From the IMG/VR virus record IMGVR_UViG_3300020172_006270, positions 62,001-126,000 of that record: a stretch of 64,000 bases of DNA; one strand, written 5' to 3'. A model generated the notes under the pieces. The model did no database searches. It saw nothing but the letters and a program-made list of their open reading frames with translations, and was not told the origin of the DNA. This document shows positions 872 to 33,702 of the stretch, piece by piece (positions within the stretch are counted from its first letter, which is position 1; every line of letters starts with the position of its first letter). The position numbers and the translations under genes were made by a program.

Positions 872-2095
872 TTACTCGTTTGTCATCATGCCCATCTTGG
901 GGAGGAATACTTCCAAAGGCAAGGTTTCCTGATCGCCCGAAGTTGATCTCATTTGCTTGAGAGTCACAGTCCTTGCGGTCTTTTCTTTTTCTCCCAAGAT
1001 GACCATATACGGTACTTTTTTCTCATACCCGATGGCAATCTTTTGTTGTAGCGTCCGATTCGAGTGATCGCATTCACACCGAATCCCTTGAGCGAGCAAG
1101 GCTTCTTTGACTTCGTTGGCGTAATCAGCAACCTTGTCGCTGATTGGTGCAATAGTAACACCGACCGGAGCCAACCACATTGGTAAATTCCCATCAGTGT
1201 GTTCTAACAGCACACCGATGAAACGCTCGAAGCTGCCATATATCGCTCGGTGAATAACAATCGGAGTTTGTTCTTTGTCTTCCTTGTCGGTGTAAGTGCA
1301 ACCGAATCGCTGCGGCAATTGGAAGTCTAACTGGATAGTAGCAGTTTGCCATTCACGACCCAGGGAGTCAGTTACAATGAAGTCGATTTTCGGTCCATAA
1401 AAAGCACCGTCTTTATGAGCCACGTCAAACTTCAAATTATTTTCACACAAGGCGTCTTCAAGGCTTGCTTCAGCATTATCCCAAGTCAATATATCGCCCA
1501 TGAAGTTATCGGGACGAGTGCTGAGTACGGATCGGAACTTCATTCCGAACCAGCCGTATACTCTGCCGATCATAATGAGAATTCGCTTGATCTCGCTTTG
1601 CAGGTTGTCCGGCGAAACGAAAATATGGGCATCATCTTGGCAGAACGCACGACAACGAGTAAGTCCACCCAAGGCACCGGAAACCTCGTTTCGATGCAAT
1701 GGGCCATACTCGGCGAACCGCACGGGCAAATCTCGATAGCTCCACTGCTTTGAGCGGAATATCTCCATATGCCCAGGGCAGTTCATTGGCTTCAAACAAC
1801 AATCTTCATGTTCTTCGTCTTGCTTCTCGCCAGTTGGCTTATCGCTGACGAAGAACATATTTTTCGCATAGTGGTCCAGATGCCCGCTGGTTGCATAAAG
1901 TTCGGACTTCCAGACGAGTGGGGTCCGAACTTCTTGGCAACCATTGGCTTCATTGAGTTGGCGAATGCGATTCAGCAATGATTGATAAAGGACAACTCCC
2001 TTCGGAAGCCAAATCGGACAGCCCGGAGATAGAGGGCTGAACATGAAGAGGTCTAGTTTCTGGCCGATTGCTCGGTGGTCCCGGTTGTTGTCCAT
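872..2095 (-). CDS. thrS: threonyl-tRNA synthetase, catalytic core plus anticodon-binding domain only
   Basis: DHRAIGQKLDLF, KPMNCPGH, HRNEVSGALGGLTR, QDDAH, GAFYGPKID, TIQLDF, IHRAIYGSFERF motifs; starts at the catalytic core. Confidence 0.97.
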   Translation of the reverse strand: MDNNRDHRAIGQKLDLFMFSPLSPGCPIWLPKGVVLYQSLLNRIRQLNEANGCQEVRTPLVWKSELYATSGHLDHYAKNMFFVSDKPTGEKQDEEHEDCCLKPMNCPGHMEIFRSKQWSYRDLPVRFAEYGPLHRNEVSGALGGLTRCRAFCQDDAHIFVSPDNLQSEIKRILIMIGRVYGWFGMKFRSVLSTRPDNFMGDILTWDNAEASLEDALCENNLKFDVAHKDGAFYGPKIDFIVTDSLGREWQTATIQLDFQLPQRFGCTYTDKEDKEQTPIVIHRAIYGSFERFIGVLLEHTDGNLPMWLAPVGVTIAPISDKVADYANEVKEALLAQGIRCECDHSNRTLQQKIAIGYEKKVPYMVILGEKEKTARTVTLKQMRSTSGDQETLPLEVFLPKMGMMTNE

Positions 2096-4553: not shown

Positions 4554-5642
4554 CTAAAGATAATAGGGTCGGAATTCCTCAACAGCAATCCAAATCAGAC
4601 CGTTTTTTGCACGGCTGGCCGCTGTATAAGACCACCGCACGTTGTCCCACTTATCGCATCGCTGCTCATATACGATCACGTTGCCCCACTCGTCGCCCTG
4701 GGCTTTATGACAAGTAATCGCATACGCATAATCAAACGGGTTGGCAACCTGCGAGAAGTCAAACTGGTTGGAGTCCTTGCCGAATTGATCTGGGTCGTAA
4801 TGCACCTTCTCGAAGAAGTTGCCGTCCGAGATAAAGTCGAAGCGGTCGTTCTTGTGAATCTTCTGAACGACTCCCTGCATTCCGTTGAATAGACCCTGCT
4901 TCTTGTTGTTCCTCAAGCAGATAACCTTCTCGCCTTTTGCGATGAAGGTATATTGGATTTTCTTTTCAATACGCACTCGCTCGTTGAGTTGCACACGAGT
5001 CTTATTGAAGGCACAGATGATTTGATCGACCGAGGCAAGGTGTCGATCCTCGATCATCTTTTCTCGGACAATCTGAACTTGCTTCGCACCCTTAAATGAA
5101 TTCGCAGATTGGCCCTTGCGTAGATGCTCGGCAAAATATGCAATCTCGCCAGCATTACGGTGAACCGTCTCCAGCTTATACATTGGATTCTGCATAAGGT
5201 TGAATTTGGTTCCAATAGGCTCAAGCTGGCCGTGATCGCCGACATAGATAATCGGCAAGCCGAACGACATGAGATCGTCGTGTATTTCCTTGCTCACCAT
5301 CGACGCTTCATCAATGATGAAGCCATCCACACCTTTCGTCATCAGATCGGACTTATCTGTGAGGAACCATACAGTCTCTCCCTTTTCGTCTTTGTAGGGT
5401 TGATATATGGTGCTGTGGATCGTATTGGCATTCATTCCTTTTTTACGCAATACGTTAGTGGCTTTTCCGGTGAAAGCCGCTGCGCAAAAAGATCGCCCTT
5501 TGCGATGAAGGGCGTCGAGCATCACTCGAATAATTGTTGATTTTCCGGTCCCCGCATATCCACCAAGAGTTTGCATCTGGTGGTTGTCCATGTTGCCCAC
5601 CAGGAGCTTCAGAACATCTTTTTGTTCAGTTGTCAGGGACAT
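4554..5642 (-). CDS. SF1B helicase, Dda/RecD-like
   Basis: GYAGTGKST Walker A, IIDEASMV, VGDHGQLEP, YAYAITCHKAQG, YTAASRA. Confidence 0.92.
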   Translation of the reverse strand: MSLTTEQKDVLKLLVGNMDNHQMQTLGGYAGTGKSTIIRVMLDALHRKGRSFCAAAFTGKATNVLRKKGMNANTIHSTIYQPYKDEKGETVWFLTDKSDLMTKGVDGFIIDEASMVSKEIHDDLMSFGLPIIYVGDHGQLEPIGTKFNLMQNPMYKLETVHRNAGEIAYFAEHLRKGQSANSFKGAKQVQIVREKMIEDRHLASVDQIICAFNKTRVQLNERVRIEKKIQYTFIAKGEKVICLRNNKKQGLFNGMQGVVQKIHKNDRFDFISDGNFFEKVHYDPDQFGKDSNQFDFSQVANPFDYAYAITCHKAQGDEWGNVIVYEQRCDKWDNVRWSYTAASRAKNGLIWIAVEEFRPYYL

Positions 5643-8444: not shown

Positions 8445-9590
8445 CTAATTCCCGTATTTTGGCCGAACACCGAAAATGTGCGGTATGAATCGACTCATGT
8501 TCCCCGTCACAAGGGTCTTGTCTTCTCGAATGCCGATTCCACATGCCCAGCCATTGACCATCCAACTCCCAATGCAGGCGTGGTTGCCGTCGAACTTGGG
8601 TAATTCCCAAAGATGCTGATATACACACGGGCCATCATAAGGACCATCAGTTTTGAGCAGCAATTCTCCATGCTCAAATATTTGCACATTAGCACCCTCA
8701 CGACTCAGAATAGGCTTCTGAACGTAAGGCTTATTGCGAAGCGGTTGGAATGATGCTTCCAACAGGTTCGGATGATCTGGAAACAACTCCCACAGCACAG
8801 GCAAGATTGCCTTATTGCTCAAGAGTGCCTTCCAAGGAGCCTCAAGCCATTTGCTTGTTTTGAGGAACAGCTTTTTGCCGAACTCATCAGTCTGCATCCA
8901 TTCCCACGGATACAGCTTGAAGCAGGTTTGAATGGGATTTTCATTCAGGTCGGTAAATGTACGGCGACCTTCGTTCCACCCAATGTTCTCAATGTCAATA
9001 TATTCCGTCTCCCAGCCAGCTTGGATGGCGGTATCACGGAGATAATTGACGTTCATGTAGTCTTCGAGATTGCCAGCAAGTGCTGTGAAGTACAACACTC
9101 CTGGCGTTACGGCTCTCAGTTCTTTCCACACTTCGATCAGTCGTTCGTGGATTGAGTTGAACTGGTTGCGATTCGGGAATTTGTCTTTGGCCCAATACCA
9201 TTGGGTTACAGCGGCTTCGATTAGGCCGGTTGGCGTATCAGCGTTATATTCCAACATTTTGGGTTGGGTTTTTCCGTCGTAGGAAAAATCAAACCGACCA
9301 TAAATGGTGTGTTCATCGTGTTCCCAACTGTCACGAATGAACTGATGGAATTCAGGCGGGATCAAGAAGGCATCGAAGAGATTATTGTCGATGACGTGTT
9401 GGACGGCCTCAAGACAACGATCATTCAGTTCGTAAGACGCCGCTTCGAGGGTGTTTATCTCGGCAGCATCAAATTCGTAGTATGCCGATTCATCCCAATA
9501 AATATCACCATCGAATGTATGAAACAACATGCCTTGACCTTCGACGGTCTTCTTCCAGTCGGGCCGAAGATCAGTTATATGGCGTTTCAT
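8445..9590 (-). CDS. glutathionylspermidine-synthase-family ATP-grasp ligase (YgiC/YjfC-like)
   Basis: YWDESAYY, YGRFDF, LEYNADTPT, FNSIHERLI, FKLYPWEWM, KPILSREGANV, GIGIRED. Confidence 0.93.
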   Translation of the reverse strand: MKRHITDLRPDWKKTVEGQGMLFHTFDGDIYWDESAYYEFDAAEINTLEAASYELNDRCLEAVQHVIDNNLFDAFLIPPEFHQFIRDSWEHDEHTIYGRFDFSYDGKTQPKMLEYNADTPTGLIEAAVTQWYWAKDKFPNRNQFNSIHERLIEVWKELRAVTPGVLYFTALAGNLEDYMNVNYLRDTAIQAGWETEYIDIENIGWNEGRRTFTDLNENPIQTCFKLYPWEWMQTDEFGKKLFLKTSKWLEAPWKALLSNKAILPVLWELFPDHPNLLEASFQPLRNKPYVQKPILSREGANVQIFEHGELLLKTDGPYDGPCVYQHLWELPKFDGNHACIGSWMVNGWACGIGIREDKTLVTGNMSRFIPHIFGVRPKYGN

Positions 9591-11535: not shown

Positions 11536-11949
11536 TCACAAGGTTTTCCAATTCCCGTCCGATTCCCTTTTCAGGTAAATCACTTCCACGCCTAATGGTT
11601 TTTCTTCTTTTTTGTCGAGTTCCAACTCAGGCCAGATTCGCTTCATGATCTTAGCCCAAATGAAATACAACACCAAGGTCAGGATAACGAAGTCAATCAT
11701 GGTTCCAATAAGACGGCCCACTTCTAGGTTCATCCCAGGAAAAGGATGTGCCACCCATGTTCTCCAATCGCCGCCAGTGCCAACCACTAAGTAATTGACA
11801 AATGGCATGATGAGATAATCGGATATGCCAGATACAGCCTTTTGAAATGCTGTGGCAAGTATCAGGCCGATAGCGACTCCCAGCATATTGCGATTGAAGG
11901 CGAAGTTTTTGTATTCTTGGAACTCTTTGTTTGGATCAATAGGTATCAT
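11536..11949 (-). CDS. mscL: MscL-family mechanosensitive channel
   Basis: EYKNFAFNRNMLGVAIGLILATAFQKAVSGISDYLIMP matches the MscL S1/TM1 pattern; second TM helix present. Confidence 0.8.
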   Translation of the reverse strand: MIPIDPNKEFQEYKNFAFNRNMLGVAIGLILATAFQKAVSGISDYLIMPFVNYLVVGTGGDWRTWVAHPFPGMNLEVGRLIGTMIDFVILTLVLYFIWAKIMKRIWPELELDKKEEKPLGVEVIYLKRESDGNWKTL

Positions 11950-13073: not shown

Positions 13074-13075
13074 AG

Positions 13076-13159
13076 TGACCTCGGTGGGACTTGAACCCAC
13101 ACGTCCTTTCGGACACAAGTTCCTAAGACTTGAGCGTATGCCAATTTCGCCACGAGGCC
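13076..13159 (-). tRNA. tRNA-Leu(TAG), long variable arm
   Basis: cloverleaf, CAAGT-CTTAGGA-ACTTG, GGTTCAAGTCC, A73. Confidence 0.95.
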
Positions 13160-13203
13160 GTTATTTTGCGCATGAGTTCGCCAAATTTTCGTGTTCGCCA
13201 TAC

Positions 13204-13232
13204 ATTTTACCACGTTTTCGGCATCTTGTAAA
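13204..13232 (-). promoter_or_regulatory. sigma70-type phage promoter
   Basis: TTTACA-17nt-TAAAAT with CGTGG. Confidence 0.7.
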
Positions 13233-13235
13233 ACG

Positions 13236-13317
13236 TAGCCCTGGCGGGACTCGAACCCGCAATCCTTTCGGCGACAGATTTTAAGTCTGTTGTGTATACC
13301 AATTCCACCACAGGGCC
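13236..13317 (-). tRNA. tRNA-Leu(TAA), long variable arm
   Basis: ACAGA-CTTAAAA-TCTGT, GGTTCGAGTCC. Confidence 0.95.
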
Positions 13318-13319
13318 GC

Positions 13320-13508
13320 TCATTCGTCTTTATCGTCTTTGTGACAGTCGCAATGACAACCTTTGTGTTTGTTCTTGTATTCTATGTACTTCCTGTATCT
13401 GATTTTATTGTACCAGTTGGTGCCGGTCATTGTTCCTAAAATGGCAAGGATTGCTGTCACCAGGATATAACCAATTTCTAAAAAGCCACCACAAATACAA
13501 GCAATCAT
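13320..13508 (-). CDS. small membrane protein with a Cys/His tail
   Basis: RBS GAGGA, MIACICGG..., one TM helix. Confidence 0.6.
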   Translation of the reverse strand: MIACICGGFLEIGYILVTAILAILGTMTGTNWYNKIRYRKYIEYKNKHKGCHCDCHKDDKDE

Positions 13509-13533
13509 TTCACTGTTCTTTCCTCGGAGTATC

Positions 13534-13577
13534 AAAAAAATGAGCATATCACCTAAGCCTTCTTCGGTGATATGCTC
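13534..13577 (-). terminator. intrinsic terminator downstream of the rRNA-like RNA
   Basis: GAGCAUAUCACC...GGUGAUAUGCUC followed by AUUUUUUU. Confidence 0.85.
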
Positions 13578-13604
13578 CCAGGCACCAGCAATGCAATGCC
13601 GGTG

Positions 13605-13794
13605 TCGAGTGTCAGGTTGGCTCGGCCAGTGTGCTATTACGCCAAAAGGGATCGCAAACAAGGAAGGCCCAAGTTTTCTCCCTACTCTTTGAATGGACCG
13701 GATTGCTCCGGCGCTGTGGCTGCTTCTAAGCCAACATCCTGGCTGTCTTTGTTTCCCCGAAAGGCAGGTCGTACCTTACCTCTAAATCACTCGA
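13605..13794 (-). ncRNA. structured RNA containing a 23S rRNA H42-H44 (GTPase-associated centre) mimic
   Basis: AGACAGCCAGGAUGUUGGCUUAGAAGCAGCCA [20-nt insert] CCAUUCAAAGAGU [41-nt insert] GCGUAAUAGCACACUGGCCGAG, closed by UCGAGUG/CACUCGA. Confidence 0.88.
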
Positions 13795-13840
13795 TCTACC
13801 GTAGTCATTGTATTCACAATGCTTCCTACAGCGGTTTGGC

Positions 13841-14275
13841 TCACTTATCCAACTTGGCAGGCACAGTGCCTTCCTTATTGGACTTGTCGGCAGCGATCTT
13901 TGGCTCAGGAACGAGCCATCGGGTCATTGCCGTAGTCTTAGTATAGCCAAATTGCTGAATGGCAGCGTGATACCCGTCTGCATAATTGTTTTCAGCACCG
14001 CAGAGCTTCAGTGCGTCATCCCAGCCGTCTTGATACGCACCGGGGGTTTGTGGGCCACCGATGCGAATCAGGGCGGCTTTATATCCCTGATCGTAGGTGG
14101 GCTTGCCAGCAAGCTCGGAGATTTCATCCTTGAGAATACGATGCTCGGCATCGTAGATGGAGTTCACCAGCGAGAGTCGCTGATTCTCCTTCTGAATATT
14201 CCAGGTGTGCCACGTCATTGCGCCAATGCACAATGCAGAAATCCCGGCAATGGTCCATCCAGTTTTCGTACTCAT
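13841..14275 (-). CDS. hypothetical membrane-anchored protein
   Basis: N-terminal TM helix; YDQGY/YQDGW/YADGY repeats. Confidence 0.7.
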   Translation of the reverse strand: MSTKTGWTIAGISALCIGAMTWHTWNIQKENQRLSLVNSIYDAEHRILKDEISELAGKPTYDQGYKAALIRIGGPQTPGAYQDGWDDALKLCGAENNYADGYHAAIQQFGYTKTTAMTRWLVPEPKIAADKSNKEGTVPAKLDK

Positions 14276-14356
14276 TTGCAATCTTCCTTCGGGTCTTGGT
14301 TTGGAAATCAACACAAAGTCGGAGTATACAGTCATGGAAGATAAAATCAAGCCGAG

Positions 14357-18408: not shown

Positions 18409-19581
18409 TTACAGCAGTTCCGTCACGACGCCTGAGCCAATCGTCATACCGCCCTCTCGGATAGCGAAATGACTGCCTTTTTCAATGGCAATCGGCTTAT
18501 CCAGGGTGATAAACAGGCAAGTGTTCTCGCCCGGCATAACCAATTCGATTCCTTCCGGCATTTCAACAAGGCCGGTGACGTTAGTGGTTCGGAAGAAGAA
18601 CTGCGGCTTATAACCGTTGAAGATCGGGGTGTGACGCCCGCCCTCATCCTTGCCCAAGACGTAAATTTCACTCTTGAACTTGGTGTGAGGTTTGATACTT
18701 CGTGGTTGTGCCACAACCTGTCCACGCTCCACCTGATCGGCTTTGATGCCTCTCAGCAGCAACCCGACGTTCTGACCAGCTTCGCCAAATTCCAATTGCT
18801 TGTTGAAGGCTTCGACGCTGGTGACAACCGATTCCAGAATGTCTCCCAGGCCCAAGATTTCAACTTTGGTTCCGACCGTGACGGTTCCTTGCTCGATCTT
18901 GCCCGTGACTACACAGCCACGACCTTCGATGTTGTGAACGCCCTCGATAGGCATCAAGAAAGGACGGTCAATAGAACGGCTGGGGTCAGGGATATAAGAA
19001 TCCAGAGCCGCCATCAGTTCTACGATGCACTTGCTTGCTGCGGGATCGGCAGGGTTATCCAGAGCGGGCTTTGCGGCCCCACGGATAAAGGGAGTCTTCT
19101 CACCATCGAAGCCATACTTCGTCAGCAAGTCTCTCGTTTCCATCTCGACCAGTTCGAGCAATTCCTTATCCTGAACCAGATCACACTTATTGAGGAACAC
19201 GACAATATCCGGCACGCCCACCTGACGAGCGAGCAGAATATGCTCTTTCGTCTGAGGCATAGGACCGTCTGCTGCATTGACGAGCAATACAGCGCCGTCC
19301 ATTTGAGCGGCCCCGGTAATCATGTTCTTCACATAGTCGGCGTGACCAGGGCAGTCGATGTGAGCATAGTGACGGGTATCCGTCTCATACTCAACGTGCG
19401 ACGTGGTGATCGTTACCGTTTTGGTAACGTCACGAACGGTGCCGCCCTTGGCGATGTCGCCGTATGCTTTCTTTTTTGCGAAACCCTTTTCGGCCTGAAC
19501 AGCGAGAATAGCTGCGGTCAGGGTCGTCTTCCCGTGGTCAATGTGACCAATCGTTCCGACATTGATGTGGACTTTCTTCAC
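18409..19581 (-). CDS. tuf: elongation factor Tu
   Basis: [54 protein letters not shown]; GTG start after AGGAG. Confidence 0.98.
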
Positions 19582-19705
19582 TTTACTTTCTCCTGTGATC
19601 TTTACGATAGATCACTGTTGGAGGTTTTGATCTCTATATCCCCACTACAGAATAGTGTTTCTACTCACAACGAGTAAGAGCCAAGGCATCCAGAAATCGA
19701 AACAG

Positions 19706-19789
19706 TGCCGCTCCCCGGACTTGAACCGGGACGCCGGTAAAGGCATCAGATTTTGAGTCTGACGTGTCTGCCAATTCCACCAGAGCGGC
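19706..19789 (-). tRNA. tRNA-Leu(CAA), long variable arm
   Basis: TCAGA-CTCAAAA-TCTGA. Confidence 0.95.
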
Positions 19790-19802
19790 ATAAACAAAAC
19801 AG

Positions 19803-19877
19803 TGACGGGTGTGGGACTCGAACCCACAAAACCATGATTTTAAGTCACGGATGTCTGCCTAGTTGCATCAACCCGCC
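19803..19877 (-). tRNA. tRNA-Leu(TAA), short variable loop
   Basis: CGTGA-CTTAAAA-TCATG, variable region GTTTT. Confidence 0.88.
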
Positions 19878-21757: not shown

Positions 21758-21814
21758 ATGTTTTCCTAAAAACAGGTGTTTTCCCACATAGGAAAACATG
21801 CGTTTTTAGGAAAG

Positions 21815-21888
21815 TCGCTCCGGTGGGACTCGAACCCACAGCATCCCTGGTTCTAAGCCAAGGTGGTCTGCCAATTGCCTACAGAGCG
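21815..21888 (-). tRNA. tRNA-Leu(TAG), short variable loop
   Basis: CTTGG-CTTAGAA-CCAGG, variable region GATGC. Confidence 0.88.
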
Positions 21889-21894
21889 TTCAAG

Positions 21895-21966
21895 TGGACT
21901 GTGAGGCGCTCGAATCCTCGTCTCAGCGTTTTCAGCGCTGCGCTACACCATCTCAGCTAACAGTCC
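21895..21966 (-). tRNA. tRNA-Phe(GAA), atypical T-arm
   Basis: CAGCG-CTGAAAA-CGCTG. Confidence 0.82.
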
Positions 21967-21974
21967 ATATACAG

Positions 21975-22058
21975 TGTCCGAGGGGAGAGTCGAACTCCCA
22001 CGCCTTTTACGGCACAAGGCCCTCAACCTTGCGTGTCTACCAATTTCACCACTCGGAC
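21975..22058 (-). tRNA. tRNA-Leu(GAG), long variable arm
   Basis: CAAGG-TTGAGGG-CCTTG. Confidence 0.95.
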
Positions 22059-22070
22059 AAAACAAATCAG

Positions 22071-22145
22071 TGGGCTGTCTCAGAGTCGAACTGAGTTCTC
22101 ATGTTCTTCAGACATGCGCTGAATGACCGCACTAGCTCACAGCCC
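22071..22145 (-). tRNA. tRNA-Phe(GAA)
   Basis: CATGT-CTGAAGA-ACATG. Confidence 0.88.
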
Positions 22146-22154
22146 AATATTCAA

Positions 22155-22334
22155 TTATTCTTTTGTTGCTTCTTCAAGTTCCCTGATGCAATCTCGCAAT
22201 GATATTGTTCGTCCATGCTGGACGCCCATTGCAGTCAATGGGTTCATATCTTTTGCGACATTAGGATTCTCTTGAAATCGCTTCAATCGTTCTTTCCATT
22301 TTTGAATCAATTCTTGTATATTTGTTTCTTGCAT
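22155..22334 (-). CDS. hypothetical small protein
   Basis: RBS AAGGA, MQETNIQELI. Confidence 0.65.
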   Translation of the reverse strand: MQETNIQELIQKWKERLKRFQENPNVAKDMNPLTAMGVQHGRTISLRDCIRELEEATKE

Positions 22335-22350
22335 ATTTAATCCTTCCAAG

Positions 22351-22434
22351 TCTCCGGGGGGAGAGTCGAACTCCCACGCCTTTTACGGCACAAGATTCTG
22401 AGTCTTGCGTGTCTACCAATTCCACCACCCGGAG
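22351..22434 (-). tRNA. tRNA-Leu(CAG), long variable arm
   Basis: CAAGA-CTCAGAA-TCTTG. Confidence 0.95.
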
Positions 22435-22441
22435 ATAAAAG

Positions 22442-22530
22442 CGGAAGTCAAGGGAATTGAACCCTTACCGGATATTTCACCGGGCCTGTTTTCAAGACAG
22501 GTGCAACAAACCAATATTTGCCTAACTTCC
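22442..22530 (-). tRNA. tRNA-Ser(TGA)
   Basis: CCTGT-CTTGAAA-ACAGG, long arm, G73. Confidence 0.92.
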
Positions 22531-22555
22531 ATATTGTGTCAACAACTTTGACATA

Positions 22556-22627
22556 GAGGATACACCGGCTTCGACACCGGATATGTCCCGTTTCTAGCAG
22601 GATGAGTTACATTTCTCCATGTACTCC
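22556..22627 (-). tRNA. degenerate tRNA-like element, anticodon AGA (Ser)
   Basis: GGAGTACA/TGTATCC bulged acceptor, GAG/CTC D-stem, TCCTG-CTAGAAA-CGGGA, aberrant T-loop. Confidence 0.5.
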
Positions 22628-22646
22628 ATATCGCATTTGACACAAG

Positions 22647-22733
22647 CGGAAGCCAAGGGAATTGAACCCTCACCGGGATTAACCGGGCCTGTTTTCGAGA
22701 CAGGTGCAACAAACCAGTATTTGCCTAGCTTCC
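22647..22733 (-). tRNA. tRNA-Ser(CGA)
   Basis: CCTGT-CTCGAAA-ACAGG. Confidence 0.92.
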
Positions 22734-22746
22734 ATAAAACAACAAG

Positions 22747-22836
22747 CGGAGGACAAGGGAATCGAACCCTCACCGGGTATTTCACCGGATCGGTTTAGCA
22801 AACCGACGTAGCAACACCACCATCTACCTATCCTCC
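22747..22836 (-). tRNA. tRNA-Ser(GCT)
   Basis: TCGGT-TTGCTAA-ACCGA. Confidence 0.92.
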
Positions 22837-22842
22837 ATTCAG

Positions 22843-22931
22843 CGGAAGCCAAGGGAATTGAACCCTCACCGGATATTTCACCGGACCCGCTTTCCAGGCG
22901 AGCGCAACAAACCAGTATTTGCCTAGCTTCC
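22843..22931 (-). tRNA. tRNA-Ser(GGA)
   Basis: CTCGC-CTGGAAA-GCGGG. Confidence 0.92.
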
Positions 22932-22987
22932 GTGTAATGCACTATACTTTGAACATTAACCAGGGCTAATGTTCATTCTATCGTACA

Positions 22988-23287
22988 TTATGCTTCAACC
23001 TTCACCAACTTGCCAAAGATACAGTTCCGGCCAACCCAGCCATTGATATGGCCTTTGTTGTTGCCGATCTGGAATCGGTCGCCTTGTATTGCTTTGATTA
23101 AGTGCAGGTATTGTTTGCCTGCAACTTTGCACAATACAATGTCGCCCGTATCCAAAACGCCAGTCACCGGCTCGACAGTGCATAACTGTCCTGATTCGAT
23201 CTTCCCGACCATTGAGTTGCCTCGTGGTCGAAACGAAACCGTCTCACCTGTTTGGAGTTTCGCTATGTAACCAGTCGCCCATCCCAT
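22988..23287 (-). CDS. S24/S26 peptidase-like protein
   Basis: RPRGNSM, GDIVLC, YLHLIK. Confidence 0.75.
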   Translation of the reverse strand: MGWATGYIAKLQTGETVSFRPRGNSMVGKIESGQLCTVEPVTGVLDTGDIVLCKVAGKQYLHLIKAIQGDRFQIGNNKGHINGWVGRNCIFGKLVKVEA

Positions 23288-23301
23288 AGTAATTCTCCAA
23301 G

Positions 23302-23385
23302 TGCATCCGGCAGGAATCGAACCTGCATGTCCCGAAGGAGGCTGGGTTACAGCCAGCTAGACCCACCACACTGTCTAACGGATGC
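23302..23385 (-). tRNA. tRNA-Tyr(GTA)
   Basis: GCTGG-CTGTAAC-CCAGC, long arm, atypical D-arm. Confidence 0.9.
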
Positions 23386-31926: not shown

Positions 31927-32052
31927 TTTGTTGCCGCATGGTTGTATAGTCCATGCGGCGTAGAGATCGCTTGCTTATTTTCTCGGATTGCATTATGCTT
32001 TACTCCCATATGTAAGCAACTGGAAAAAGGCCAACTATATGTGGGAGCGAGC

Positions 32053-33702
32053 ATGTGCAAGTATTTAATTGTCGTCGGTGGTGTGATCTCAGGAACGGGG
32101 AAGGGCGTCTCAGCAGCGAGTGTTGGCCTTTTGTTGAAGTTTCGTGGCCATAATATCACCCTTGTAAAATTTGACCCGTATCTGAACACCAATGCCGGAA
32201 TTCTGGCTCCCCGTGAACACGGGGAGTGTTTTCTCTGCGATGATGGCACGGAAACTGACCTCGATCTCGGCCACTATGAGCGTATTGCTGGCATCAATGT
32301 CAACAAGATGAATATTTGCACGTCCGGGACGTTGCACAAGGAGTTGATCGAGGAGCAGGAATCAGGCAAATACCTCGGCCAAACCATTCAGCTTATTCCC
32401 CATTTGACGGATAAAATCCAACAACGTCTGGTGGATTTGGGCAAAGATAAAGATGTCGTTATTGTTGAGATTGGTGGCACTGTTGGCGATAGCGAGAGTT
32501 TCGCCTTCTTTGAAGCCATGCGACAATTCAAACAGAAGTTCAAAGACGACGTATTGATCGCTATGGTCGCTCCCATTCTGTGGGTGAATACGATCAAGGA
32601 ATTCAAGACAAAGCCCCTCCAAAACAGCGTGAAAGAGCTTCAGCGGCATGGCTTGCAGCCCGATGTGATTTTCTGCCGTGTAGATCGAGCCATCCCAGAG
32701 AAGTTGTTGGCCAAAGTCTCAATGCTCACCAACGTAAAGCGTGAGTGCATTTTCGACGCTCCAGACGTTCAGAGCATTTATCAAGTTCCGCTGGAGTTCT
32801 ATGATCGGCACGTTGACGATCTTTTCGTTGACCTTTTCCGATTGAATCGGAGCGCTTGCCGCATTCACAAATATCGTGAAGTTGTAGAAAAATACGTTGC
32901 TAACCATATGCCAGCTATCGAGATCGGTGTATTTGGCAAGTACGACAATTGCGACGAAGCGTATATGTCCCTGAAGGAATCTTTGATTCACGCCGGTATT
33001 GCCAATGATGTTCGTGTAAACATCAAATGGATCAGGGCTGATGAATTGGAGAAATATAAAGACCTTCGAGGTATTCATAAGCATTTTGAGGGCTTGGATG
33101 GCATCGTTGTCCCCGGTGGCTTCGACAATCGAGGTACTGAGGGCAAGATTAAAGCTATTCAATACGTTCGTGAGAAGAAGATTCCGTTCTTGGGTATTTG
33201 CCTGGGCCTCCAGTGTGCAGTTATTGAATTCGCCCGAAATGAGTGCGATTTAGACGGAGCCAATAGCCTTGAATTTAACAAGGAAACTCCGTATCCGGTC
33301 ATTCACTTCGTTGAAGGGCAAGAAAAGCTGAACAAAAAATCAGCCAATATGCGATTGGGGTCGTATGAGTGTGAATTGACCAAGGATAGTATTGCCGCCG
33401 AAGTTTATGGCAAGCCTCTTATTAGCGAACGCCATCGCCACCGATATGAAGTCAATCCAGAGTTTGCCGATCAATATGCCAAGCGTGGATTGAAGATTAG
33501 CGGTCGAAATCCTGATTCTGGACTCATTGAAATGATGGAATTGGATCGCAATATCCATCCTTATTTCATTGGCACCCAAGCTCACCCGGAATTCAAAAGC
33601 AGGCTAATGAACGCCGCTCCGTTGTTCCGTGGGCTGATTGCGGCAGCAGTTCAGCACCGAGGATTGAAACTTCAGCCAGAGATTCCCGTAGAGTCTCAGT
33701 GA
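32053..33702 (+). CDS. pyrG: CTP synthase
   Basis: GGVISGTGKG, KFDPYLN, DLDLGHYER, GICLGLQ, ERHRHRYE, QAHPEF. Confidence 0.97.
   Translation: MCKYLIVVGGVISGTGKGVSAASVGLLLKFRGHNITLVKFDPYLNTNAGILAPREHGECFLCDDGTETDLDLGHYERIAGINVNKMNICTSGTLHKELIEEQESGKYLGQTIQLIPHLTDKIQQRLVDLGKDKDVVIVEIGGTVGDSESFAFFEAMRQFKQKFKDDVLIAMVAPILWVNTIKEFKTKPLQNSVKELQRHGLQPDVIFCRVDRAIPEKLLAKVSMLTNVKRECIFDAPDVQSIYQVPLEFYDRHVDDLFVDLFRLNRSACRIHKYREVVEKYVANHMPAIEIGVFGKYDNCDEAYMSLKESLIHAGIANDVRVNIKWIRADELEKYKDLRGIHKHFEGLDGIVVPGGFDNRGTEGKIKAIQYVREKKIPFLGICLGLQCAVIEFARNECDLDGANSLEFNKETPYPVIHFVEGQEKLNKKSANMRLGSYECELTKDSIAAEVYGKPLISERHRHRYEVNPEFADQYAKRGLKISGRNPDSGLIEMMELDRNIHPYFIGTQAHPEFKSRLMNAAPLFRGLIAAAVQHRGLKLQPEIPVESQ

Follow-up and report, generated by a model that had tools for sequence, protein, structure and literature searches.

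The domain of bacterial 23S rRNA that binds the ribosomal protein uL11 belongs to the GTPase-associated centre (GAC) of the ribosome; as an isolated 58-mer it folds alone and binds uL11 tightly (Draper laboratory; PMC1802607). The C-terminal domain (CTD) of uL11 contacts nucleotides 1058-1060, 1062-1065, 1075-1083 and 1088 (E. coli numbering), and the uL11 N-terminal domain and the thiostrepton pocket involve 1067-1070 and 1095-1098 (PMC1802607). Extra-ribosomal RNAs that reproduce an rRNA protein site are known from the ribosomal protein leaders (the L10 leader RF00557, L1 and others), and such an RNA would be expected to compete with rRNA for a ribosomal protein; uL11 is not a known autoregulator, and uL1 controls rplKA (PMC10931766). 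Here we describe a free-standing, phage-encoded copy of the 58-nt uL11-binding domain, found on the minus strand at positions 13743-13625 of a 64,000-nt stretch of the IMG/VR virus record IMGVR_UViG_3300020172_006270 (hereafter the window, meaning this whole stretch of 64 kb). The element is among the shortest representatives of a large family of structured phage RNAs: a covarying phage non-coding RNA (ncRNA) family that has the uL11-binding GAC fold as its universal core and is co-oriented with tRNAs.

Compared with the 58-mer of 23S rRNA, the phage RNA has the same helices (the end of helix 42, H42; the lower and upper parts of H43; H44), the same 9-nt and 6-nt loops, and it keeps the tertiary contacts (U1060, A1088, G1071, C1072, U1082-A1086 or C-G, G1093/A1098). 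It differs in being free-standing and encoded by the phage, not embedded in a 2.9-kb rRNA; in always containing a foreign domain between 1090 and 1091, followed by a UUUG linker; in having A at 1101, which pairs with U1090, where rRNA has U; and in the variation of A1067, 1068, 1070, 1096 and 1097. Moreover, H42/Kt-42 is replaced by a plain Watson-Crick closing helix in the family members other than the window copy. Unlike the ribosomal protein leaders, which are cis-acting 5′ untranslated regions of the cell's own ribosomal protein operons and loose structural mimics, the phage RNA is a near-exact copy, located among tRNAs and not upstream of a ribosomal protein gene; the Rfam L10 leader RF00557 and the other leader models gave no match to the window up to E = 10. 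Other phage or prophage ncRNAs, GOLLD and ROOL, are often found beside tRNAs, are possibly co-transcribed with them, and have an elaborate and variable structure (PMC5737381); however, they have no sequence or structure relation to the GAC-like family, which is smaller (87 to ~410 nt) and based on an rRNA domain, and their Rfam models (RF01998 and RF03087) matched neither the window nor 30 family loci. The T4 RNAs rnaC and rnaD (species 1 and 2) are likewise small stable RNAs of a phage tRNA cluster, released by tRNA-processing enzymes; a kinship with them was rejected, as the T4 sequences lack the GAC signatures.

Rfam 15 contains no family for the phage GAC-like RNA, and the GenBank records of the cultured carriers leave the element unannotated. 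The Rfam 15 models, applied to the window at gathering threshold and at E up to 10 and also to the 30 family loci, returned only tRNAs, tmRNA, one abiF, weak YrlA, partial LSU H43 and sub-threshold DUF805b matches. The last of these, to the DUF805b RNA (RF02914) at 13711-13679 of the minus strand, scored 21.3 bits against a gathering threshold of 35.6 and was judged a chance resemblance; it spans the first insert of the element and the AAAGAGUAGG junction, and the sharing of a AAAGAGUAGG-like string is probably coincidental. No description of the phage RNA was found in the literature searched; an entry under an uninformative name in the supplement of a csRNA catalogue is possible.

With its two inserts removed, the window copy is identical to E. 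coli 23S rRNA at 52/58 positions over 1051-1108 and at 61/67 over 1046-1112, the core differing at 1078, 1083, 1089, 1090, 1101 and 1108. A match to H42-H44 on this strand had been proposed in a first-pass annotation made from the sequence, and it is borne out by the Rfam bacterial large-subunit rRNA model (LSU_rRNA_bacteria, RF02541), which aligns 13751-13621 of the minus strand to model positions 1084-1153 with a 67-nt insertion (21.8 bits, E = 1.1e-4 in a 551-nt search); this score is below the 50-bit gathering threshold and comes from a single partial stretch of a 2.9-kb multi-domain model. In blastn against the 23S rRNA of Salmonella LT2, 13748-13717 is identical at 32/32 positions (E = 3e-10) and a second piece aligns at 13642-13613, while the rest of the 64-kb window gives chance-level matches only, in agreement with the earlier statement that no other rRNA sequence is present. 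The GAC helices 1051-1055/1104-1108, 1057-1059/1079-1081, 1062-1064/1074-1076 and 1091-1092/1099-1100 are all found in the core; the tertiary-core nucleotides U1060, A1088, G1071, C1072, A1073, U1082-A1086, A1084/A1085 and G1093/A1098 are identical, and the equivalents of A1067 and A1095 are both kept. The strands are interrupted twice, by a 20-nt hairpin at 1078/1079 and by a 41-nt hairpin plus linker at 1090/1091. The parts of the element, in 5′ to 3′ order of the RNA after the whole region, are as follows.

13534-13840, minus strand: whole non-coding region, from the stop codon of the upstream open reading frame (ORF) to the end of the terminator U-run, 307 nt
13799-13831, minus strand: 5′ hairpin, prediction only
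13788-13794, minus strand: 5′ arm of the outer helix, UCGAGUG, pairing with 13605-13611 in the minimum free energy (MFE) and centroid folds
13755-13781, minus strand: hairpin AGGUAAGGUACGACCUGCCUU and UCGGG arm, the latter pairing with CCUGA at 13612-13616 (single-sequence prediction)
13744-13750, minus strand: H42-like 5′ flank AAAGACA, in which AGACA, equivalent to rRNA 1046-1050, is identical to 23S
13625-13743, minus strand: GAC-like core, member of the phage family, corresponding to 23S 1051-1108 plus the two inserts
13721-13729, minus strand: H43 loop UUAGAAGCA, equivalent to 1065-1073 with A1067, flanked by GGC/GCC and a covarying lower stem AUG/CAU
13696-13715, minus strand: insert 1, hairpin GCCGGA-GCAA-UCCGGU in the 3′ strand of H43, between 1078 and 1079
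13684-13695, minus strand: CAUUCAAAGAGU, equivalent to 1079-1090 (3′ strand of H43, junction, A1088)
13647-13683, minus strand: insert 2, the variable domain of the family, here a short bulged hairpin of 37 nt with basal helix AGGGA/UCCCU
13643-13646, minus strand: UUUG linker from the variable domain to H44 (U, U, U and G in 42, 43, 43 and 40 of 44 family members, respectively)
13633-13642, minus strand: H44 stem-loop GCGUAAUAGC, equivalent to 1091-1100 with A1095
13617-13624, minus strand: H42-like 3′ flank CGAGCCAA, containing CGAG of rRNA 1109-1112
13605-13611, minus strand: 3′ arm of the outer helix, CACUCGA, in the MFE fold
13583-13604, minus strand: 3′ hairpin CACCGGCAUUGCAUUGCUGGUG, prediction only
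13534-13579, minus strand: intrinsic terminator in the MFE fold, a 12-bp stem with an inner 3-bp helix, then AUUUUUUU, the stem being followed by U7

No credible ORF is present on the minus strand of 13534-13840, and the predicted fold of this region is unusually stable (MFE of -108.6 kcal/mol, z = -3.64; 0/100 shuffles as stable). The MFE fold includes the outer helix UCGAGUG/CACUCGA, the flanking hairpins and the strong terminator, all of which had been read from the sequence at the outset; the terminator at 13579-13534 was missed by a simple terminator scan, because its loop is longer than 8 nt. Both loops that the first-pass annotation had singled out, those containing A1067 and A1095, are present, at 13729-13721 and 13642-13633, and so is the AGGGA...UCCCU stem near 1090 (13683-13647), which together with the UUUG linker falls between 1090 and 1091. 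The hairpin described as inserted after A1077 is present too, although one base away, between 1078 and 1079. As for the Kt-42 flanks, said to be retained, only the letters AGACA and CGAG are kept: the predicted C-stem, UCGGG/CCUGA, lies 8 and 5 nt away from them, and the C-stem, 3-nt bulge and tandem G-A pairs that make up a K-turn do not occur in register in the window copy. Since the canonical C-stem is out of register, neither a true K-turn nor an L10 site is demonstrated in the window.

The same architecture is found in at least 180 phage contigs of IMG/VR; the scans of this database give lower bounds. A DNA pattern with both loops and a spacer longer than that of rRNA matched the window's own 223-kb contig and ten unrelated phage contigs, and a pattern with an N{20,50} spacer between the two loops had no match. 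Scanning with the H43 loop returned at least 119 stretches; among the 124 matches listed, 110 are complete elements and only one has the rRNA spacing. The family 3′ signature UUUGGCGUARYAGCACAC added at least 120 further stretches, mostly from new contigs. The match with rRNA spacing, L026:3724-3740, has the H43 loop at the true rRNA distance from H44 and lies in a 42-kb IMG/VR contig that probably carries a real 23S rRNA, and may be misclassified or chimeric; another match, L004, lies inside a coding region and was discarded as due to chance. Some phage contigs have two copies of the element on the same strand, ~0.3-1 kb apart (L219:3999-4336 and 5207-5383; L143:3776-4082 and 4836-4939; L060:5138 and 5456).

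The first-pass annotation had suggested a covariance-model search for homologues together with a covariation test, and analyses of both kinds were made. A model (R1) built from 28 members, the window copy among them, produced 108 matches in 100 sources; in the window it gave a single match at 13625-13743, with 83.9 bits and E = 1.6e-23, values that are high partly by construction, as the window copy is in the training set. Among 185,579 species genomes, a stricter signature had 39 matches, of which ~27 are real: nearly all of these are contigs of metagenome-assembled genomes (MAGs) packed with tRNAs, and three are Clostridia isolates. The small number of such matches, mostly in MAGs, indicates that the family is essentially viral. 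Cultured phages with an unannotated element are Pectobacterium CBB, Serratia BF, Cronobacter GAP32, the Erwinia pEa_SNUABM phages, Yersinia fHe-Yen9-04, Xanthomonas XacN1/XaC1/XbC2, Acinetobacter ME3, Ralstonia RSP15, Aeromonas 4_4572, and Pseudomonas pf16, Astolliot and Milchi. In blastn and megablast searches of a phage collection, the 10-kb neighbourhood of the element had no close relative, and the first matches of the element were contaminating 23S records only. The collection holds bacterial 23S records and short contaminant contigs labelled as phage (e.g., KM209255, OR84xxxx, AFYI01, NR_076079), which dominate the results for any rRNA-like query.

Family members have a constant order of parts. 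From the 5′ end these are a closing helix, the H43 lower stem, GGC, the 9-nt loop, GCC, A-(U/C), the H43 3′ strand and UAARGAGU; then come the basal helix of the variable domain, UUUG, GCG-UANN-AGC-ACAC and the other arm of the closing helix. The family is defined by an H43 loop of the U-U-R-R-A-R-G-C-A type, (A/G)GAGU, the basal helix, UUUG and GCGUANNAGC-ACAC, each of which is present in the window copy. The variable domain is always located in the 5′ strand of H44, between 1090 and 1091, and ranges from ~25 to more than 350 nt; accordingly, the distance between the two loops is 57-362 nt in the pattern scans, and whole elements measure 87 to ~410 nt (median 190), the window copy being among the shortest. 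An extra hairpin at 1078, as in the window, occurs in ~9% of an unbiased family sample. The minimal members of 87 nt (L136, L146, L181, L211 and L216; e.g., L211:3131-3217) combine a GGA/UCC stem in H43 with the loop UUGAAAGCG and an insert of 25 nt, and are a candidate natural minimal construct.

The helices are supported by compensatory changes. RNAalifold recovers the closing helix (H42-distal), the two stems of H43, H44 and the insert's basal helix, and 13/21 of its pairs are compensated; in the basal helix double changes are seen in 5/5 pairs across the family. In 95 distinct sequences aligned to the covariance model, 92.4% of the cells are paired, against 72.6% in shuffled alignments, and the covariation score is 0.409 against 0.111 (0/500 shuffles reach it); sliding the partner by 1-3 columns lowers it to at most 0.106. 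Examples are G1055-C1104, which becomes A-U, U1082-A1086, which becomes C-G, and the 1057-1059/1079-1081 stem, found as AUG/CAU, CUG/CAG, AGG/CCU, ACG/CGU and GGG/CCC. A 32-nt run identical to enterobacterial 23S, and rRNA-like H42 flanks that only the window copy possesses, are what would be expected of a decaying host 23S fragment, or of an assembly chimera with host rRNA; however, only ~67 rRNA positions are present, broken by two structured inserts at family-specific sites, and the same design, with compensatory changes, is shared by hundreds of independent contigs and by cultured phages whose genomes are finished. The comparative data refute such an origin, to which we assign a negligible probability, and they uphold the earlier proposal of a free-standing GAC mimic selected for its fold, since hundreds of contigs and cultured phages carry it with compensatory changes in every variable helix.

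The variable domain raises the question of whether the ribosomal part of the RNA has a ribosomal ligand at all. The GAC fold could be a mere chassis, a stable junction captured from rRNA that presents a functional variable domain, whose role might be ligand binding, oligomerisation as in ROOL and GOLLD, or base-pairing. Inserts of more than 350 nt and subfamily motifs at a fixed position would fit such a role, as would the relaxation, relative to rRNA, of the loop nucleotides that face the factors and the phage, tRNA-adjacent habit shared with ROOL and GOLLD (PMC5737381). One of these motifs is a second conserved module, CACCCCG-N4-YGGUAAGG, present in 32/146 members and in most of them placed 18 nt ahead of where the variable domain ends; 23S rRNA contains no significant match to it. 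On the other hand, the variable domain lacks conservation across family members and in the shortest of them, including the window copy, it is reduced to a hairpin of 25-37 nt. Only the GAC core is universal and nearly invariant, and one would not expect a mere scaffold to preserve over 20 unpaired or non-canonical positions exactly as in rRNA in phages of very diverse hosts. We consider it unlikely that the core is only a support.

Several other features of the inserts were observed. Carriers of the CACCCCG-N4-YGGUAAGG module include L128:2610-2650, L083, L091, L200 and L182; the window insert is without it, and GGUAAGG is present in the 5′ flanking hairpin at 13781-13761. A subfamily (L006, L007, L011-L013, L035, L064, L009/L010) has GUGCGAAAUG ... 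(A)UGAUGUGC around a hairpin in the insert, an arrangement that, from its letters, may resemble an internal loop of the box C/D or loop-E type. AGUAC-GNRA-GGA hairpins, with the pattern of the sarcin-ricin loop (SRL), are found in the largest inserts, L050 and L088, and with 2/110 occurrences they could be due to chance. The large-subunit rRNA model found no second rRNA-like module in the family inserts.

The pattern of constraint in the core was read in a filtered subset of 44 members, on the side of the RNA opposite to that used for ascertainment. Invariant positions are G1059, U1060, A1077, C1079, A1084, A1085, G1087, A1088, G1089 and U1090 in the 5′ part, and G1091, G1093, U1094, A1098, C1100 and A1103 in the 3′ part; C1092, G1099, A1101 and C1102 are kept in 43/44, so that the H44 pairs G1091-C1100 and C1092-G1099, and G1093/A1098, are invariant or nearly so. 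No more than 35% of members have the rRNA-identical H43 loop. Position 1067 carries A in 79% and G in 18%, either G or A is found at 1068, and A or G at 1070; in the H44 loop, 1096 likewise has A or G, and 1097 has U, C or A. A1095 is A in 44/44 of the filtered subset, which comes from the first scan, and G, C or part of a shifted loop in several members of that scan outside the subset. The conserved positions cover the uL11-CTD contacts, while 1067-1070 and 1096-1097 vary; thus, the tertiary core and the uL11-CTD surface are kept and the factor and antibiotic pocket is relaxed. Furthermore, rRNA-like H42 flanks (L10/Kt-42) are limited to the window copy, 1/105 members, and an ordinary closing stem takes their place elsewhere, which indicates that mimicry of the L11 site is a property of the family and mimicry of the L10 site is not; the inclusion of L10 in the proposed mimicry is therefore lost as a family trait.

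The variation of the pocket bears on two further roles that had been suggested, a decoy for thiopeptides and a scaffold for translational GTPases. The phage RNA does contain the H43/H44 cleft and the H44 loop that are recognised by thiostrepton, micrococcin and the toxin Tre23; however, the pocket nucleotides are not strictly kept, and the drift of the EF-G/thiopeptide pocket (1067, 1068, 1070, 1096, 1097) argues against either role for the family as a whole. More generally, the RNA might directly bind EF-G, EF-Tu (including the phage's own), IF2, RelA or the tRNA elbow, thereby modulating or sequestering these factors. The element is linked to tRNA arrays, the window encodes EF-Tu, a class II aminoacyl-tRNA synthetase and 14 tRNAs, and oligonucleotide mimics of the GAC domain reportedly bound EF-G in vitro (Munishkin and Wool, 1997), all of which would fit. 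Nevertheless, the contacts that such factors would use, A1067 and 1095-1097, are the least constrained loop positions, there is no SRL partner except for the unverified SRL-like hairpins in 2/110 members, and most cultured carriers have, to our knowledge, no EF-Tu. We regard direct factor binding as improbable. A partnership with the phage EF-Tu had also been put forward in the first-pass annotation: the gene is real, but EF-Tu is unlikely to be a general partner, because the cultured carriers CBB, XacN1 and pf16 are not known to us to encode it.

The window belongs to a T4-like jumbo myovirus, as indicated by tail sheath, gp15, gp19 and baseplate genes, and this phage invests unusually heavily in translation. 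Its EF-Tu is full-length (390 aa, 18409-19581, minus strand) with the Pfam domains GTP_EFTU, D2 and D3; an overlapping ORF of 402 aa on the other strand (18469-19677) is probably spurious. The class II aminoacyl-tRNA synthetase (407 aa, 872-2095, minus strand) has a tRNA-synt_2b core and an HGTP anticodon-binding domain. The 14 tRNA genes found by ARAGORN are all on the minus strand, at 13075-13317, 19705-19877 and 21814-23385, and they are strongly skewed in specificity (7 Leu, 4 Ser, 2 Phe, 1 Tyr); at its gathering threshold, Rfam 15 sees 8 of the 14 and no other family in the 64-kb window. Unusual auxiliary genes were also noted, for a glutathionylspermidine synthase (E = 5e-146), a homologue of the mechanosensitive channel MscL and a CTP synthase, located at 8445-9590, 11536-11949 and 31942-33702. 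The immediate neighbours of the element are listed below.

13841-14350, minus strand: upstream ORF, 169 aa, with a predicted membrane segment and no Pfam family
13320-13513, minus strand: downstream small ORF, ~62 aa, with a hydrophobic N-terminus and a Cys/His-rich tail
13235-13317, minus strand: nearest tRNA, Leu-UAA, on the same strand and 217 nt beyond the terminator

In this order, a mimic followed by a hairpin, a strong terminator, a small ORF and tRNAs, all on one strand, a cis-acting leader or attenuator could be envisaged, in which uL11 or uL10 would bind the mimic and control the terminator at 13579-13534 and, with it, whether transcription continues into the small ORF and on to the tRNA-Leu genes; leaders that mimic rRNA are a known kind of regulator (PMC10931766). 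However, no alternative antiterminator pairing is evident, no ribosomal protein gene lies downstream (neither rplK nor rplJ turned up among the 50 larger window ORFs scanned) and the Rfam models for the L10 and other leaders do not match. Across the family, moreover, the elements usually abut tRNAs without a terminator, or precede unrelated genes. Control in cis is accordingly very unlikely.

The association with tRNAs is a general one: the nearest tRNA is co-oriented with the element in 83/83 loci, a tRNA lies within 20 nt of 41/117 elements, and in pf16 the element is placed between tRNA-Asn and tRNA-Pro. No recurrent protein family was found within 2.5 kb of the element, the largest cluster being present at 17/219 loci, and this lack of a recurring neighbour points to a host ligand. 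Neighbouring genes include homing endonucleases, TerD and a PNK-phosphatase-Rnl1 RNA-repair fusion; the latter, a kinase-phosphatase-Rnl1 ligase of 730 aa (L231:2522-4714), stands beside the element in 5 loci, including Flintibacter muris, and in the Xanthomonas phage XacN1 an annotated 2′-5′ RNA ligase is directly upstream of it (L127:1828-2478). Other ncRNAs seen in the tRNA islands of the element are a tmRNA (100 bits, L088:8163-8535), a tmRNA-like fragment (L050:4144-4232) and sub-threshold matches to the Y-RNA-like YrlA (L057:5015-5109).

These surroundings can be read in terms of defence. A host enzyme or toxin directed against the ribosomal GAC (an ADP-ribosyltransferase, a nuclease or another defence effector) could be titrated or competitively inhibited by an abundant phage copy of its target, the RNA serving as a decoy or sink and keeping the ribosomes working, in parallel with the phage tRNAs that bypass tRNA-targeting defences. 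Bacterial toxins directed to the GAC exist; Tre23 ADP-ribosylates H44 at 1095-1098 (PMC8661411). The tRNA and RNA-repair neighbourhoods, the lack of a phage partner protein near the element and a high copy number, with which co-orientation with the tRNA arrays is consistent, would all agree with this function. Conversely, a substrate decoy titrates a catalytic enzyme poorly, we know of no anti-phage system that targets the GAC, and the drift of 1096-1097 and A1067 is odd for a faithful copy of a target, even if it could also reflect non-modifiable inhibitor variants. A toxin sink thus appears unlikely.

The mechanism that we prefer, as possible rather than probable, is that of a trans-acting decoy of the ribosomal uL11 site which binds host uL11. 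The RNA would be produced alongside the phage tRNAs, with tRNA-processing nucleases probably trimming it, the RNA of the window phage ending instead at its own terminator; a stable RNA, folded like the ribosomal GAC, would then accumulate and act in trans. Its most likely ligand would be host uL11, through the CTD of the protein. uL11 belongs to the exchangeable ribosomal proteins and is required for the activation of RelA (relC). Binding would form a small ribonucleoprotein and draw exchangeable uL11 off the ribosomes, or it might compete for the factors that read the uL11-rRNA surface. The most plausible outcome, though speculative, would be that late in infection the uL11-dependent activation of RelA (the stringent response) is blunted; altered RF1-dependent termination comes second, and is also speculative.

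Several considerations weigh against the uL11 decoy. Binding, expression and phenotype are all predictions made from sequence, and the consequences for RelA and RF1 are conjecture. The nucleotides contacted by uL11 are also needed for the tertiary fold, so that their conservation cannot separate uL11 binding from folding. A sponge must compete with tens of thousands of ribosomes in each infection cycle, and a simple sponge leaves the variable domain, which is most of the RNA in typical members, unexplained. Finally, the hairpin between 1078 and 1079, present in the window and in ~9% of the family, lies inside the uL11-CTD footprint at 1075-1083 (PMC1802607), where it could hinder uL11 binding. 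A broader formulation, only just short of evenly balanced in our judgement, is that large phages of diverse hosts carry a trans-acting uL11/GAC-domain RNA, fused to a lineage-specific module and expressed with tRNAs, which would engage a host ligand (uL11, or a factor or toxin directed to the GAC) to reprogram or protect translation.

The phage GAC-like RNA appears to be a new RNA class; the principle of rRNA mimicry was already known from the ribosomal protein leaders, and the new part is a viral, trans-encoded and near-exact copy of an rRNA domain. Regardless of function, it represents a widespread covarying ncRNA class, with hundreds of contigs as well as cultured jumbo and T4-like phages among its carriers, and in its members one of the best-studied RNA tertiary folds occurs in natural variants that tolerate insertions. 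If the proposed function is true, phages would manipulate the factor-binding stalk base of the ribosome by means of an RNA decoy, a strategy that is not known to have been described; no earlier viral decoy of a functional centre of rRNA would then be known, and a new layer would be added to the control that phages exert over the ribosome. A mimic of an rRNA domain would then join tRNAs, tmRNA, bS21, EF-Tu and synthetases in the phage translation toolkit, and the way in which phages handle the stringent response, or toxins directed to the GAC, would become testable.

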